64,000 nt of DNA from Mytilus californianus (GCF_021869535.1 NW_026262734.1:59210001-59274000); one strand, 5' to 3'. Shown: positions 28,227 to 34,477, numbered from the stretch's first letter. Program-made: numbers and translations. Notes: generated by a model not told the origin, from the sequence alone.

Positions 28227-30024
28227 CTGCAAAAAGAAAATATATTGGACATCAGAATCAACGCAGCCATACTTTATTTTTTTCCTTACTAAATAGATTA
28301 TAAGCAAATACAGCAAATGCAAACCTTTGCCTGAAACATGTTTAAGCGGGAAACACGCAAATACTGTTTTTTTTAAACACACAAGAGAAATACAAATATT
28401 TATTATTTGAATTACAATTGTATATGACAGATACTAGATATACAAGAGACAAACAACATCTAACAAGATGTCTGAGATAAGACATCTAGATGAACGGATT
28501 GCACGTATAGTCAAGGAAAACAATGCTTTTCATTTGCAAACACAAATTGAATGGAAACAGTGTTGGCCACTGAAATGTAATGTACAAAACGTATTTATTT
28601 TGATACTCCAAGTTACATAGAAATGAAAAGTAAAGGAAAGATGTCATATGGACATTAAAGCCCTGTAGTAAAGCAATAATATAAAGTATTTTCAAAGATA
28701 GACCAAGTTTTAAACATTAATATGTGATACATTATTTTAATTAATCAATTAGCATAAATATGTTGTGAAATATTTCTTTGCTTTTTTCAACTTTGGCTTT
28801 TTAATGACTGTTTCTCTATTCCTTAATACATAAAGAATACGGATTGGTTGATTTTTATGTATATGGATTTTCAAAGGCCTTATAATTGCTTCCTGGTGTA
28901 TTTAATCAAACGTAGATAGTTTGCACGGTTAATAACATAAACGGTACTATTTTCTGCACCAGATGCGCATTTCGACAATCAATGTCTCTTCAGTGATGCT
29001 CGAGTTCAAAATATTAATCGTCAATAAGAATTGTTTACTGGCAGAAATTCAAATCTGAATACAATATTTATTATCGCTATTTTGTGTATTTTTTCTTTGA
29101 TCTTGTTTTGTGATAATTTTTAATGTCATGCTTCTCGCTTGAGAAAGAAAATTATCGCCTGAAAATAAGGGCGTACATGCCGTTGTCAATTTAAAGATCA
29201 ACGTTGTTATAGTCAAAATAGCGGTAAACAGATTACTAATGGTCTTTTAAACTCGATGTTGTTCGGTCACATCTCATCTCAGGGCTGTCGCCCTTCGATG
29301 AAATTGTAGCACAAGCAATATCCTTTCGCTTGAAAAACCATTAATAATCTATCAATATCAATATACAATTTGATTTTTATATCAGACATTTTCATGGTTA
29401 TCTTATACCAAACGGACTTTTTATTTTCCTGTTGTTATTATTCTTTTTTTTAATTGTCTGGTCTTCTTGAGTAAACATGTCAGTGTTGGTTTGATTTATA
29501 CATGTTTGCCAAAACGTCTAATAGATTTAAATGAACGATATCAATGAACGATTACCGTACTAATTCCAGTATTAAAAATTATCCAAATATATTTTTGTTT
29601 AAAAGATTCAAGAAGAGGTACTGGGAGCAAAGTTCATAAAGTGATACCCCCTGTTTTCAAAGTCCATGCTTTGCTAAGGGAAACCAAAATAATAATTCGA
29701 AAAAAGAGATAAAATATGAGATGAACCGGCAGTATATGGTGACGATTCAGAAAAAGTTTTAAAATTCTTATTATGAGTTTAGTAAAAGAAGCGATTAAAA
29801 ATATCTAATAAAGTGTACTGAATTTTACTAATGTCACAGAGACCATTTTGGTGCGAAAGCAAATACAACACAACAAGTCGGATACAAATCTGGGACACAA
29901 GGACGGAAACCTCTTACTGTATATCGACCGCATAAAGAAACAGGATTGGGTGTATGATTTTTATTATGTCATAATGTCATAATCCTCGGTTCATAACTCC
30001 AATTATATAAATACTAAAACATAC

Positions 30025-30128
30025 CTTTTTTGCATCTTCATAGGACAGAATATGTATGGGATTATCAGGATTGTTTTGTCTTACCCTCTCCCATAATTGT
30101 GTATGTTGAAACCAGTCGTTGAACAGAA
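30025..30128 (-). CDS. Sulfotransferase A exon 3 (not in ORF track)
   Basis: ctacttaag| VLFNDWFQHTQLWERVRQNNPDNPIHILSYEDAKK |gtat; 104 nt, phase 1-0. Confidence 0.92.
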
Positions 30129-30882
30129 CTTAAGTAGACATGTACTATTAGTTAATAAAACAAGATATTAAACTGTAAATGTATGTTATATAGATACAAT
30201 GGATAAGCGTGGATTCTTGAAAAAGAAACCATGAGCCCGGAGGGCGAATGGTTTGTTTTTCATGAATCTACGCTTATCCATTGTATCTATAACTTAAACT
30301 ATTGTGTTAATTTCTTTTCAAAATTAAAGCCTTTTCTTAATTAGAAGGTATTGTAAGTGAGTTTAAATAACCATGTCATCGTGTCCAACGATGCATTGAT
30401 AAATCTCAGATCACAATTAATTGGTTAACAATTAAAATACAAATATAACACTTCTACCTTTAAAGATCTTTATATTACCAGGCATAAGAATATTATCTGT
30501 TTATACAAAATAAGACATAATCGAAATTATTTCTAATAAAATTGAAAATAGAAATGGGGAACGTGTCAAAGAGACAACAACCCGACCAAAAAGCATATAT
30601 AAATTAAGTATATATAATAAGTATGTTATCGAAATTTTTCTAGCACTCTAGGCACATCACGATTTTCTTGCATAGGAATTTGCGAACAAACCTTTGTAAA
30701 ATTATGTAGTAAATCAGATGAAATCATACTATATTTATAAAACAAAAATTGACAAATATAATGTAATCATTTTTGTTTCAAACATGTGAAATAGCCAATA
30801 ATAATTAAAAAAAACCGGTAAAACTCGCTATTATTACAAAAATATCCACTATAACATGCAAAATTAGAAACAACAACAGAAT

Positions 30883-30990
30883 AAAATAAGAATTGGAACA
30901 ACAGAGAGAATACAGGGATTCGAACCTAACCGACAAATCCCTATCTTTAACTCATTGATTTTAACCATGCTCACCTCGCGGCTACCAACT
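30883..30990 (-). ncRNA. Candidate Pol III ncRNA, type 1 copy 1 (vault-RNA-like layout)
   Basis: Minus strand: AGTTGG-TAGCCGCGAGG (boxA-like) ... GGTTCGAATCCC (boxB) ... CCAATT-cttaTTTT. The 5'/3' terminal stem is AGTTGG/CCAATT. A TATATA lies ~30 nt upstream (31017-31022). Confidence 0.45.
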
Positions 30991-31107
30991 CATACTATAC
31001 GACTGCCTATTGTGTCTATATAAAGGAACAAGCCCTGTGTGTCCGATGAACCGATGTATATCAGATGTTCATTTAAATATATAAAATAGACATCTATAGC
31101 GTAACCC

Positions 31108-31225
31108 ATTGGTAGCCGAGAGGTTTCGTCGATGTGTTGATGTCAGTCACACATAACAGATTTCAAGGAAGGGTTCGACTCCCAGTGAAGGCGTATAAAA
31201 ATTACAAAATTAAAGGTAAGTTTTT
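31108..31225 (+). ncRNA. Candidate Pol III ncRNA, type 2 copy 1
   Basis: TATATAAA at 31078; ATTGG-TAGCCGAGAGG (boxA) ... GGTTCGACTCCC (boxB) ... TTTTT at 31221-31225. Confidence 0.45.
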
Positions 31226-32087
31226 AAATTAATTCCATTAGTGAACAGAAATCAGTAAATTAGCCAATTCAAACTTAATGAAATTAAGCACACAAAGGAA
31301 ACAATTGAATATAATTTGGTGAGTCAATTTCAGCGGCAGATTTAGGAAGCGTTGATTCTAGAAAAAGAATCCACGATAAATGAATAGGCTGACGTCACCA
31401 CAATGGTTTAAGTTATATAGATACAATGGATAAGCGTGGATTCTTGAAAAAGAAACCATGAGCCCGGAGGGCGAATGGTTTGTTTTTCATGAATCTACGC
31501 TTATCTATTGTATCTATAACTTAAACTATTGTGTTAATTTCTTTTCAAAATTAACGCCTTTTCTTAATTAGAAGGTATTGGAAGTGAGTTTAAATAACCA
31601 TGTTATCGTGTCCAACGATGCATTGATAATTCTCAGATCACAATTAATTGGTTAACAAAATACAAATATAACACTTCTACCTTTAAAGATCTTTATATTA
31701 TCAGGCATCTGAATATTATCTGTTTTTACAAAATAAGACATATTCGAACTTATTTCTAATAAAATTGAGAACGGAAATGGGGAATGTGTCAAAGAGACAA
31801 CAACCCGTCCAAAGAGTATATATAAAGTATATATAATAAGTATGTTACCGAAATTTCTAGCACTCTAGGCACATCACGATTTTCTAGCATAGGAATTTGC
31901 GAACAAATATTTGTAAAATTATGTAGTAAAACAGATGAAAATCATACTATATTTATACAACAAAAATTGACAAATAGAATATAATCATTTTTGTTTCAAA
32001 CATGTGAAATATCCAATAATAATCCAAAAAATAAACGGTAAAACACGCTATTATTACTAAAATATCCACTTTAACATGCAAAATTAG

Positions 32088-32201
32088 AAAAAAAAACAGA
32101 ATTGGGACAACAGAGATAATACAGGGATTCGAACCTAAACCGACAAATCCCTATCTTTTAACTCGTTGATTTTAAGCATGCTAACCTCGCGGCTACCAAC
32201 T
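32088..32201 (-). ncRNA. Candidate Pol III ncRNA, type 1 copy 2
   Basis: Same layout as 30883-30990, with terminal stem AGTTGG/CCAATT followed by ctg and a 9-T run. Confidence 0.45.
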
Positions 32202-32299
32202 TATACTATACGACTGCCCATTGTGTATATATAAAGGTACAACCCCTGTGTGTCCGATGTTCATTTATATATATAAAATAGACATCTAAGTTGTAACCC

Positions 32300-32418
32300 A
32301 TTGGTAGCCGAGAGGTTTCGTCGATGTGTTGATGTCAGTCATTCATAACAGATTTCAAGGAAGGGTTCGATTCCCAGTGAAGGCATATACAAGTTACAAA
32401 AATTAAAAGTAAGTTTTT
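32300..32418 (+). ncRNA. Candidate Pol III ncRNA, type 2 copy 2
   Basis: TATATATAAAA at ~32266; ATTGGTAGCCGAGAGG ... GGTTCGATTCCC ... TTTTT at 32414-32418. Confidence 0.45.
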
Positions 32419-32867
32419 AAATTAATTCCATTAGTGAACAGAAATCAGTAAATTAGCCAATTCAAACTTAATGAAATTAGACACACAAAGGAAACAATTG
32501 AATATAATTTGGTGAGTCCATTTCAGCGGCAGATGTAGGAAGCGTTGATTCTAGAAAAAGAATCCACGGTAAATGAATAGGCTGACGTCACCACAATGGT
32601 TTAAATTAGTTTAATTGCCTTTTTAAATACCTTATCACAGTAAGGTCAATATCTTTTCATATATAGGAAACTGCCTTTAAATCCTTAACAAGTTATTTGA
32701 ATTAGTATTATACTATGCTTAAAATTATTAGTTGATATAAGAAAATCATCACGTGCAATACTGATGACGTCTCTCTGTTGAGATAGCTTTTCTGGTCATG
32801 TCAGTAGCAAATGTCCTAAATAATGTTAAAGGAAGTAAAATAACAATTTAATTTTATCTAGTGCAAA

Positions 32868-32965
32868 TTGCCAAATTCCGAAACATCGGTAACGTTGTTT
32901 TGCTAAACTCGATGCACCCTAGAAAGAACGACGTAACCACTGTTTCTGAGTTTGGCAAATTGCTT
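32868..32965. repeat. ~95-bp hairpin element (second copy 51688-51775)
   Basis: aattccgaaacatcggtaacgt...acgtaaccactgtttctgagtt; 51688 copy aaactccgaaacagtggtaacgt...acgtcaccactgtttcggagttt. Confidence 0.75.
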
Positions 32966-33019
32966 TGTTGTTTTGTAAGTGGCAAACACAATATGTGATT
33001 CTTCCTTGCTTGTTTAGAG

Positions 33020-33265
33020 GGCCTCGGTTGCCTAGTGTTCTGAGTAGTCGAACTAAAGTATCACTAGCCTGTCAACACCGAAGTTGCAACTTCGAAGCCC
33101 GCACGTAGCAGGTGCGCTCGACTCCAATCTTTATTGACTATGATTATCAGTTTTCCTACCGAAGTCGGTGGCTTCCTTCACCAATAAAAACTGACCGCCA
33201 CGAAATAGAACAACAGTGCTGAAAGTGGCATTCATTACCAATATATCAATCAATTAATCTTATTT
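33020..33265 (+). mobile_element. tRNA-headed bivalve SINE (MetaSINE-like)
   Basis: Head ggcctcggttgcctagtg (boxA) ... acttcgaagccc (boxB); core cagttttcctaccgaagtcggtggcttccttcaccaataaaaactgaccgccacgaaatag; atcaat tail. Confidence 0.8.
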
Positions 33266-33509
33266 GAACCTAAATCAGCCCGACATGTGCGAGACTGTTC
33301 GGAGAAAAGTTGTTGATCTACTTTCGTGATAATAAATATTGCTCATTCTGTAGCTTAAGCATGATGTTGTGTAAATTCTTTTTAACAATATTCTTTTAAC
33401 GATTAAATAAGTTAGTTGTACATTTGCAGATTTGAAAAGCATAATCTTTCAAAACTACGAAAGAAATAATCGATAATTGTATATTTATAGAAGTGCATTA
33501 ATTGAATTT

Positions 33510-33720
33510 GATGAGACTGTCGTACAAGTGAGAGGTTTAGCGCTATAAAACCAGGTTCAATCCACCATTTTCTACATTTGAAAATGCAAGTCAGGAATAT
33601 GACAGTTGTTGTCCATTCGTTTGATGTGTTTTGTCATTTGATTTTGCCATGTGATTAAGGACTTTCCGATTGAATTTTCCTCGGAGTTCAGTATTTTTGT
33701 GATTTTAGTTTTTAATATTG
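33510..33720 (-). repeat. Copy of the 'aaaataccgaactcc' interspersed repeat
   Basis: Reverse complement of 54215-54425. Confidence 0.85.
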
Positions 33721-33757
33721 TAACCATCGAATGTTTATATTACAATGTAATTCTTAC

Positions 33758-34078
33758 CTTTACCGTCTAAAAATAGATTCAGATAACCAGACCAGGTACC
33801 TTTCCATTTAGTTTCTTTTAGTTTGTTAAAGAAATGAAAACTTGAAATTGCTACTGCTCTTGGGTCTCTTATAACATTAATTAGTTTGCATTTCTTTTGC
33901 CTGATTGAAACAGGAAGTTGTTCGTAATACAAATGGCTTCCGAGAACTCTTGGTGGTGGCGACTGTTGCATTTTTCTAACAGCCCCAAATTCTAAAATAT
34001 ATTTCGCTGGTATTTCCTTTGAAATATCCGATGTGTTATTAATTAGCATTGTCACTACTTCCCATATCCAATGGAAAC
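33758..34078 (-). CDS. Sulfotransferase A exon 2
   Basis: gatttcag| GFHWIWEV...PPPRVLGSHLY...IRDPRAVAISSFHF...YLNLFLDGK |gtaaga; 321 nt, phase 1-1. Confidence 0.95.
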
Positions 34079-34477
34079 CTGAAATCATAATGTATTACTC
34101 ACAGGTTTTTGTTTGCTTTACGTTCCATCTATGCCGAAGACTACATGTATATCAAATAGCGAGCATAAAGGTATTAAAAAAATAATGTTTGAAACAGTAA
34201 CACTTAAACATGTTAAATGTTTCTATTGTTTCTGTATAATTTACTTTTGGGCATTGTACAAAATCATGCCTTCCTGTACTGTTTATGACGTACATGTATT
34301 TGTATGAAATCTTCTATCAATACGCAGTGGTCAATATATCATACTGCTAAAATATATCACGGTATTGTACCCAATGAATTTAGTTGATATATAACTTACA
34401 GTATCTAGTAAGAAATGAACCTACTAAAGAAAATCTAATTTTATCCATTGAATCACCAAATTAAGGTCAAGTTCAGA

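Follow-up and report, generated by a model that had tools for sequence, protein, structure and literature searches.

The nonautonomous Helentrons known as HINEs, which include DINE-1, the bivalve pearl elements and Cg_HINE of the Pacific oyster, share a characteristic signature: a 5′ subterminal inverted repeat (subTIR) whose partner lies immediately on the inner side of a 3′ palindrome, the absence of a target-site duplication and of coding sequence, and a frequent arrangement of whole elements in tandem (PMC4067079, PMC7492417). Neither of these two papers mentions tRNA-like RNA polymerase III (Pol III) cassettes (the word "tRNA" occurs 0 times in both). Pol III promoters are a feature of certain retrotransposons, such as the Helenus and Cassandra TRIMs, whose LTRs contain tRNA- or 5S-derived Pol III promoters and of which Helenus is present in Mytilus (PMC10886601). 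The literature consulted here contains no firm case of noncoding RNA (ncRNA) cargo in elements of the Helitron superfamily (PMC10701932). A tRNA-Cys cluster in Arabidopsis, with intact and expressed tRNA genes, overlaps annotated Helitrons and would be the first such cargo of a Helitron if the annotation were true, but prediction tools could not confirm the Helitron identity of the cluster (PMC10701932, 2023).

Here we describe a locus from Mytilus californianus, contained in a stretch of 64,000 nucleotides (GCF_021869535.1 NW_026262734.1:59210001-59274000; herein referred to as the window, from whose first letter all positions are counted), at which two adjoining 1.2-kb units each contain a pair of divergent, Pol III-like cassettes. 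We consider it probable, although by no means assured, that the region is a dimer of a HINE-like transposon in which two divergent type-2 Pol III units, similar to tRNAs and to the heads of SINEs, form a fixed internal module. Such a cargo of Pol III units seems not to have been described so far for the Helitron superfamily, and a DNA transposon that keeps two putative tRNA-type promoter units would be unusual.

A high-copy transposon in tandem

Unit 1 (30185–31411, canonical orientation minus) is a 1,227-bp copy of a HINE-like, nonautonomous element of the rolling-circle type, and unit 2 (31412–32604, minus) is a copy from another subfamily that is joined to it head to tail; the two are 91% identical, and repeat finding returns ~2.0 copies of the 1.2-kb unit. 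That each unit is a transposon copy is evident from its ends (GTTATATAG...CACAATGGTTTAA, also given as GTTATATAG...GGTTTAA), which recur elsewhere, are sharp and are identical across single copies. Single 1,227-bp copies with the same ends occupy at least 28 other loci at 92–98% identity and with unrelated flanks, and there is no target-site duplication in the 28 copies that share these ends. No open reading frame (ORF) of at least 70 amino acids is present within 28382–33735, an interval that covers the element.

The start of the element is formed by the 5′ subTIR, TTAAACCATTGTG (31399–31411, minus), which is constant in all copies and is adjoined by a perfect CRE-like motif, TGACGTCA (31390–31397). 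Its 3′ partner (30294–30306, minus) is complementary to it, in our reading of the sequence, at 12 of the 13 positions and lies directly internal to a terminal palindrome of 103 nt (30189–30291) with 50-nt arms that are 90% complementary. This palindrome ends 4 nt from the 3′ end of the element and is repeated at 31416–31518; the Rfam matches to it are generic, hairpin- or miRNA-like and all below threshold. Because the subTIR pair, the 3′ palindrome, the lack of an ORF and of a duplication and the precise tandem junctions match the published signature, the architecture, as far as it can be read from sequence, fits that of a nonautonomous Helentron (HINE). Matches to the Helitron_like_N model number at least 126 in the genome, in frames of up to 2685 amino acids, some exceeding 2000.

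The flanks, when compared as insertion targets, have no preference on the 5′ side and are biased on the 3′ side to WKAA rather than TT. We rejected a piggyBac-like TTAA element as the identity of the units: TTAA is invariable on the 5′ side only, young copies having a variable 3′ flank (WKAA), and the absence of terminal inverted repeats further rules it out. A core motif of ~60 nt inside the element (30535–30595) is common to far more abundant repeat families, with read and contig depth there 50–100 times that over the rest of the element and with reads that continue into an unrelated consensus. This core is probably the conserved block of pearl/BIV160-type repeats; a search of the main texts of the literature for the core motif and for bivalve SINE consensus sequences returned no match.

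The family is both numerous and widespread. A whole-genome BLAST search with the cassette region yielded at least 1414 candidate copies, the best 40 of which are 95–100% identical and are spread over many chromosomes. The pattern GGTAGCCGNGAGGT-N36-54-GGTTCGANTCC has 1057 matches in the genome, whereas its reversed control has 0; this combination of boxes is therefore not a product of chance. Exact matches to it amount to ~530 per cassette type, which agrees with the neutral decay of roughly 1000–1700 copies at 3–5% divergence (a figure that is our own estimate). Contigs from two further organisms contain the family at ~97% identity (one such contig, of 505 nt, has 11 differences), and it is therefore common to related mussels.

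The dimer in the window is a heterodimer of two subfamilies, type 1 and type 2, and the same heterodimer is present at a second locus (L028) between different flanks. The tandem junctions, AAC|TTAA, in which the end of one element is joined to the start of the next across the same TAA, are also found in contigs of another organism, and such end-to-start junctions are consistent with rolling-circle read-through. A preliminary description of the locus had noted that the cassette pair is present twice; two units do exist in the window, but the repetition is trivial, since together they form one tandem dimer of an element with many copies. In its genomic context, the dimer is situated between exons of a sulfotransferase gene, one of which (33735–34088, minus strand) is confirmed by Pfam.

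Paralogous cassettes with conserved geometry

In each unit, two cassettes of about 110–125 nt face outward from a shared spacer, which measures ~115 bp in unit 1 and 96–100 bp in unit 2, where 19 bp have been deleted. The order of parts is the same in all of them: an AT-rich TATA block, an interval of ~25–30 nt, the box A block TTGGTAGCCG(A/C)GAGGT, the box B block GGTTCGA(N)TCCC at 59 nt from the start of box A, and a terminal T-run. The minus cassette of unit 1 (30883–31024, minus strand) comprises a TATA block at 31016–31024, box A (TAGCCGCGAGG) at 30974–30984, box B (GGTTCGAATCC) at 30916–30926 and a T4 run at 30883–30886, just before which CCAATT (30891–30896) pairs with AGTTGG (30985–30990) in a terminal stem. 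The plus cassette of the same unit (31078–31225, plus strand) has its TATA block at 31078–31087, box A (TAGCCGAGAGG) at 31113–31123, box B (GGTTCGACTCC) at 31172–31182 and a T5 run at 31221–31225, and also closes a 6-bp stem of its own (CAUUGG/CCAGUG). The corresponding positions in unit 2 are 32226–32237 (TATA), 32185–32195 (box A), 32125–32135 (box B) and 32088–32096 (T9) for the minus cassette (32088–32237, minus strand), and 32266–32279 (TATA), 32305–32315 (box A), 32364–32374 (box B) and 32414–32418 (T5) for the plus cassette (32266–32418, plus strand). The minus terminator of the family consensus is a T8 run, ~20 nt downstream of the T4 position in unit 1. All of the features that the preliminary description had attributed to the head-to-head cassettes could thus be located in both units, including the spacer sizes and the minus terminal stem, and neither a SINE body or tail nor flanking repeats are seen around the cassettes, as it had also noted in regard to the body and tail.

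Type-2 Pol III promoters have the consensus TRGCNNAGTGG at box A and GGTTCGANNCC at box B. Box A agrees with this consensus at 10 of 11 positions in the plus cassette and at 9 of 11 in the minus cassette, and box B is a full match in both. With a TATA block ~25–30 nt before the expected start, 59 nt between the starts of the two boxes and an oligo-T run at the end, the cassettes have the boxes, the spacing, the upstream element and the terminator of a predicted type-2 Pol III unit. The minus box A does lack the conserved A, as had been remarked before, yet this is not disqualifying: the same variant, GCCGCGAGG, is found at the head of a multi-copy, SINE-like family in unrelated metagenome contigs, where GGTAGCCGCGAGGT is followed 66 nt later by GGTTCGAATCC, and Pol III-dependent elements can therefore have a box A without this A.

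The box A region of the cassettes resembles the D-arms of class-II tRNAs, mussel tRNA-Leu having GCCGAGTGGTCTAAGG and bacterial long-arm tRNAs in metagenomes GGTAGCCGAGAGGT. ARAGORN detects 0 tRNAs across the window and a set of 27 loci, in keeping with the earlier observation that the cassettes have no cloverleaf fold. Rfam provides no match to Vault, Y RNA or tRNA at the gathering score in the window, and none to Vault, Y RNA or tRNA (RF00005) at E ≤ 10 in 30700–32700 and six diverged copies; nor do other Rfam models recognize the cassettes. The cassettes are hence best described as candidate Pol III promoter units of the tRNA or SINE-head type.

The relationship between the two cassettes was examined on a family consensus built from 44 copies. 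Their upstream 50 nt can be aligned with a score that 2 of 5000 shuffles reach, the box A blocks are identical at 16 of 17 positions, the box B blocks are conserved, and the T-runs align together with the TAATT that follows. The interior between the boxes is exactly 46 nt long in both cassettes, with 14 of 45 positions identical (31%, versus 27% expected), which upholds the earlier statement that the middles are unrelated; likewise, box B and the T-run are exactly 49 nt apart in both, with 2 of the 34 intervening positions identical. Judged by this alignment, the cassettes are old paralogs, generated by inverted duplication of one ancestral unit together with its upstream region. That only the Pol III-defining parts and their spacing have been kept is our main argument that selection of long standing was on their function as transcription units and not on any particular RNA that they encode.

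Exact 16-mers from box A occur 743 (plus) and 650 (minus, despite two CpGs) times genome-wide, compared with 505 for the plus interior, 706 for the flank downstream of the plus cassette, 355 for a comparator from the left half of the element and 0–3 for controls; the boxes are among the best-kept words of the element, but not uniquely so. Across subfamilies (77–98% identity), the boxes are no better conserved than the cassette interiors or than the downstream flank of the plus cassette, and for this reason recent conservation is not box-specific. Per-site divergence among the 44 copies is uninformative as to box conservation, because the family is young and the sample was chosen in part by the boxes themselves.

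The cassettes are confined to the transposon wherever we sampled them. Of the pattern-match loci, 30 were sampled in genome order, and all 30 lie inside this family at 77–98% identity to unit 1, almost always as a head-to-head pair; an nhmmer profile of both cassettes detects nothing else that is cassette-like in ~180 kb of flanking and window DNA. Taken with the genome-wide counts of pattern matches and BLAST candidates given above, this bears out the suggestion in the preliminary description that these might be transposon-borne Pol III genes, in so far as every sampled cassette belongs to one nonautonomous transposon family; their use by Pol III is itself inferred.

Other classes of mobile element were considered as the source of the cassettes. 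An origin from Helenus LTRs was rejected, as the tRNA part of the published Mytilus Helenus LTRs is of another kind, class I; the motif GGTAGCCG does not occur anywhere in the published set of Helenus sequences. The cassettes do not belong to a TRIM of the Helenus/Cassandra type either, being inverted and not placed in direct LTRs. We also dropped a reading of the plus cassette as a solo LTR (TGTTCA...TGAACA, with flanking ATCAG), since the left repeat is absent from unit 2. Membership in a SINE family is contradicted by the lack of free copies among the loci and flanks sampled, of a tail and of flanking repeats around the cassettes.

Possible expression and function of the cassettes

Four runs were mapped on unit 1, two of which are raw RNA-seq from two organisms (X21 and X22). 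RNA-seq depth over the element is low and fairly even (~10–50), with 10–30 reads over the cassettes, and any of the more than 1000 copies may be the origin of the mapped reads. There are no pile-ups of transcript starts or ends in the two RNA-seq runs, which are poly(A)/cDNA libraries and poorly suited to Pol III RNAs of 120 nt. On the expected strand of each cassette (strandedness being assumed), both runs exhibit a local 2–6-fold rise in depth with a drop after the T-run. For the plus cassette, depth is 15.4 and 14.5 in X21 (31125–31206; 3.7–3.8 upstream and 7.8 downstream) and 17.8 and 18.5 in X22 (31084–31165; 3–4 upstream and 2–5 downstream); for the minus cassette (30879–30960 in both runs), it is 21 and 25.3 in X21 (~10 on both sides) and 12.5 and 10.1 in X22 (0.1–5 beside). 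These rises are compatible with weak cassette transcripts that end at the T-runs, but are no proof of them.

We hypothesize that TFIIIC would bind boxes A and B and that TFIIIB would be positioned over the TATA block, such that Pol III would produce two RNAs of ~120 nt, outward from the shared spacer. Since it is the geometry of a transcription unit that has been preserved and not an RNA product, the cassettes are interpreted as promoter modules of the transposon and not as host genes for vault-like RNAs; they might act through chromatin that is open or bound by TFIIIC, or yield RNA as a by-product. Both the use of the cassettes by Pol III and any benefit to the element are what we infer, and as a DNA transposon needs no RNA intermediate, a benefit of Pol III units is only putative. 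A stronger version, which we advance tentatively and regard as rather doubtful, is that a Helentron-type family has kept the divergent tRNA-type Pol III pair under selection in its replicating lineages, with possible uses in open, TFIIIC-bound chromatin, in a shield from silencing or in the supply of single-stranded DNA for the Rep nuclease.

The most serious alternative is that the cassettes are inert cargo, decayed remnants, in inverted duplicate, of a tRNA-like gene or a SINE head that the element once captured, with no Pol III activity today, and that their apparent conservation stems from the youth of the family and from a slowly evolving right half of the element. This explanation is a real contender, albeit an unlikely one. 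Captured host fragments are known from Helitron-superfamily elements (PMC7492417, PMC10701932), and inert relics would account for the lack of a cloverleaf, of an Rfam match and of discrete RNA ends, as well as for interiors and a flank that are as well conserved among subfamilies as the boxes. What decay leaves unexplained is the selectivity of survival between the paralogs, in which TATA, box A, box B and T-run alone persist, at exact spacings of 46 and 49 nt amid a randomized remainder; nor does it explain the strand-matched RNA bumps in two runs.

The same inverted arrangement could instead be structural, with the cassettes pairing, in a single-stranded intermediate of transposition, into an extended, imperfect hairpin required for rolling-circle transposition. 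A large palindrome is already in use at the terminus of the element, and a fold of the single-stranded DNA does pair box A with A′, box B with B′ and the TATA blocks with each other (minimum free energy −38.4 kcal/mol, z = −2.15 versus shuffles). We nonetheless consider a structural role improbable: the stabilization is modest, no compensatory changes were seen, and a hairpin provides no reason for the kept blocks to coincide with Pol III elements, promoter distances and a T-run.

Less probable again, to the point of being difficult to sustain, is the proposal that two SINE copies were inserted into the ancestral element and then carried along. The cassette heads resemble those of tRNA-derived SINEs, which are numerous in bivalves (PMC11481361, PMC4758252), and the metagenome SINE-like family shares the box A variant as well as box B. 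However, there is no SINE body, tail or flanking direct repeat at either cassette, there are no free-standing copies among the 30 sampled loci or in the ~180 kb of flanks, and the homology between the cassettes reaches ~45 nt upstream of the transcribed part, into sequence that a retroposed SINE does not carry.

The suggestion in the preliminary description that these are undescribed mollusc Pol III ncRNAs of a vault-like kind, and with it any reading of the cassettes as host genes for single-function Pol III RNAs (vault-like, Y-like or of a new class) that merely reside within repeats, is largely refuted, for although the TATA, box A, box B and T-run, the length of ~110–125 nt, the predicted terminal stems and the fold of the minus cassette (z = −2.3 to −3.6 versus shuffles) would suit it, the fold of the plus cassette does not stand out from shuffles (z = −1.1 and −0.1), the terminal stem weakens in older subfamilies without covariation, the RNA bodies are unrelated between paralogs, the RNA-seq reads define no discrete transcript ends, the more than 1000 copies lie, where sampled, all within one transposon, and the Rfam comparison with Vault, Y RNA and tRNA came out negative even at E ≤ 10.

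Should a Pol III pair under selection prove to be the true explanation, this would be the first element of the Helitron superfamily known to bear Pol III promoters. If the cassettes are active, more than 1000 paired Pol III/TFIIIC sites are scattered through Mytilus genomes, where they could serve as insulators, chromatin boundaries or sources of small RNAs, and the range of promoter modules derived from small-RNA genes would extend from SINEs, Cassandra and Helenus to a DNA transposon. If they are inert, the locus calls for ordinary repeat annotation and carries a warning, namely that a TATA block, the two boxes and a T-run in mussel DNA are no evidence of a host ncRNA gene.

Comparison with described systems

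As an element, the mussel transposon is most readily compared with HINEs such as DINE-1 and pearl, with which it shares a noncoding sequence, the layout of subTIRs and 3′ palindrome, the absence of a target-site duplication, a high copy number, the occurrence of whole elements in tandem and a module common to abundant bivalve repeats. It departs from them in its 3′ palindrome, which is 103 nt long as opposed to 5–20 nt in the described families, in having no central satellite-like array or microsatellite, in carrying the two cassettes and perhaps in its target site, the 3′ flank being biased to WKAA where insertion at TT would be expected of a HINE.

The cassettes themselves have their closest counterparts elsewhere. 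Like the heads of tRNA-derived SINEs, they have a box spacing resembling that of class-II tRNAs, a degenerate cloverleaf and a head motif, GGTAGCCGCGAGGT...GGTTCGAATCC in the minus cassette, that is identical in the repeated family of the metagenome contigs; unlike them, they lack target-site duplications as well as any body or tail derived from a LINE, were never found free-standing, and move inside a DNA transposon with a conserved upstream TATA block included. The resemblance to vault RNA (RF00006) consists of a Pol III unit of ~100–140 nt in which boxes A and B are internal, a TATA-like element lies upstream and a terminal stem may form, but is set against the lack of a covariance-model match, thousands of transposon copies in place of one to a few and the lack of a conserved RNA body. 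With Helenus and Cassandra, the mussel element has in common that a mobile element other than a SINE retains nothing of a small-RNA gene but its promoter part. Those elements are, however, retrotransposons with direct LTRs, a PBS and a PPT, whose life cycle includes transcription, whereas the cassettes are inverted units on a rolling-circle DNA carrier. Finally, the tRNA-Cys cluster of Arabidopsis also places tRNA-type units in tandem DNA annotated as Helitron; there the tRNA genes are intact and the transposon identity lacks confirmation, whereas in the mussel the identity of the transposon is clear and it is the tRNA-like units that are degenerate.

Setting and ends of the transposon dimer

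An open reading frame on the minus strand at 33735-34088 matches the Sulfotransfer_1 domain (E 1.6e-18), and the transposon dimer is therefore situated between sulfotransferase exons or genes. In each of its two units, a perfect palindromic CRE-like motif, TGACGTCA (31390-31397 and 32583-32590), adjoins the 5' subterminal repeat of the element, a position that it occupies in essentially all element copies. RNA-seq depth in the column that reports the minus strand peaks over the element's 5' end, where it reaches 38-50 as against 2.5-10 in the other column.

Several models of miRNA precursors match the 103-nt terminal palindrome (30189-30291 and 31416-31518) below threshold, the highest-scoring at 42.7 bits where the gathering score is 140; the matches are generic long-hairpin hits. 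Being present in more than 1000 copies, the palindrome could nevertheless give rise to small RNAs derived from its hairpin. A sub-threshold match of another kind, to the hammerhead type I ribozyme (27.7 bits against a gathering score of 34), occurs at 2973-3016 of L034, a locus with a diverged element copy, at a distance of ~1.2 kb from that copy, and is probably part of retrozyme-like repeats.

tRNA-like and SINE-like repeats elsewhere

Beyond the window, intact tRNA-Leu(CAG)-like genes form a long array in the mussel genome (sequence C26, 84-53759), repeated in tandem with a period of ~404-458 bp; identical copies appear by the dozen among the pattern-search matches. A dispersed and diverged family in the same genome has a class-II-tRNA-like head, GCCGAGTGGTCTAAGTAGTCGAAC...GGGTTCGAATCC, for example at C1:45874205-45874274, C2:49347251-49347320 and C13:2281365-2281433. 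Its box A and box B are separated by 59 nt, near the 57 nt of the outward-facing Pol III-type cassettes of the element, and the family is possibly a mussel SINE head and possibly a relative of these cassettes.

A SINE-like repeat was also encountered, as diverged copies, in ~20 contigs from several metagenomes (L061-L088; e.g., L061:771-836 and L083:3370-3435), with the head GGTAGCCG(C/T)GAGGTCTAAGG...GGTTCGAATCC and a conserved part downstream of it (...GGCATGGATGT...TGTGTGTTGT). The contigs that contain it are presumably host (eukaryotic) DNA in the metagenome samples.

A core motif shared with more abundant repeats

Within the element lies a ~60-nt core (30535-30595 in unit 1 and 31758-31815 in unit 2) that contains ...AAATGGGGAA...CAAAGAGACAACAACCCG..., and in each of the four runs the depth of reads and contigs is 50-100 times greater over the unit 1 core than elsewhere in the element. 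Because of this depth, and because reads over the core run on into a different consensus (...GAAAACAGCCGAAGGCCACCAATGGGTCTT), the core is common to repeat families that are far more abundant than the element itself. It may correspond to the block that is conserved in pearl/BIV160-type repeats of bivalves.
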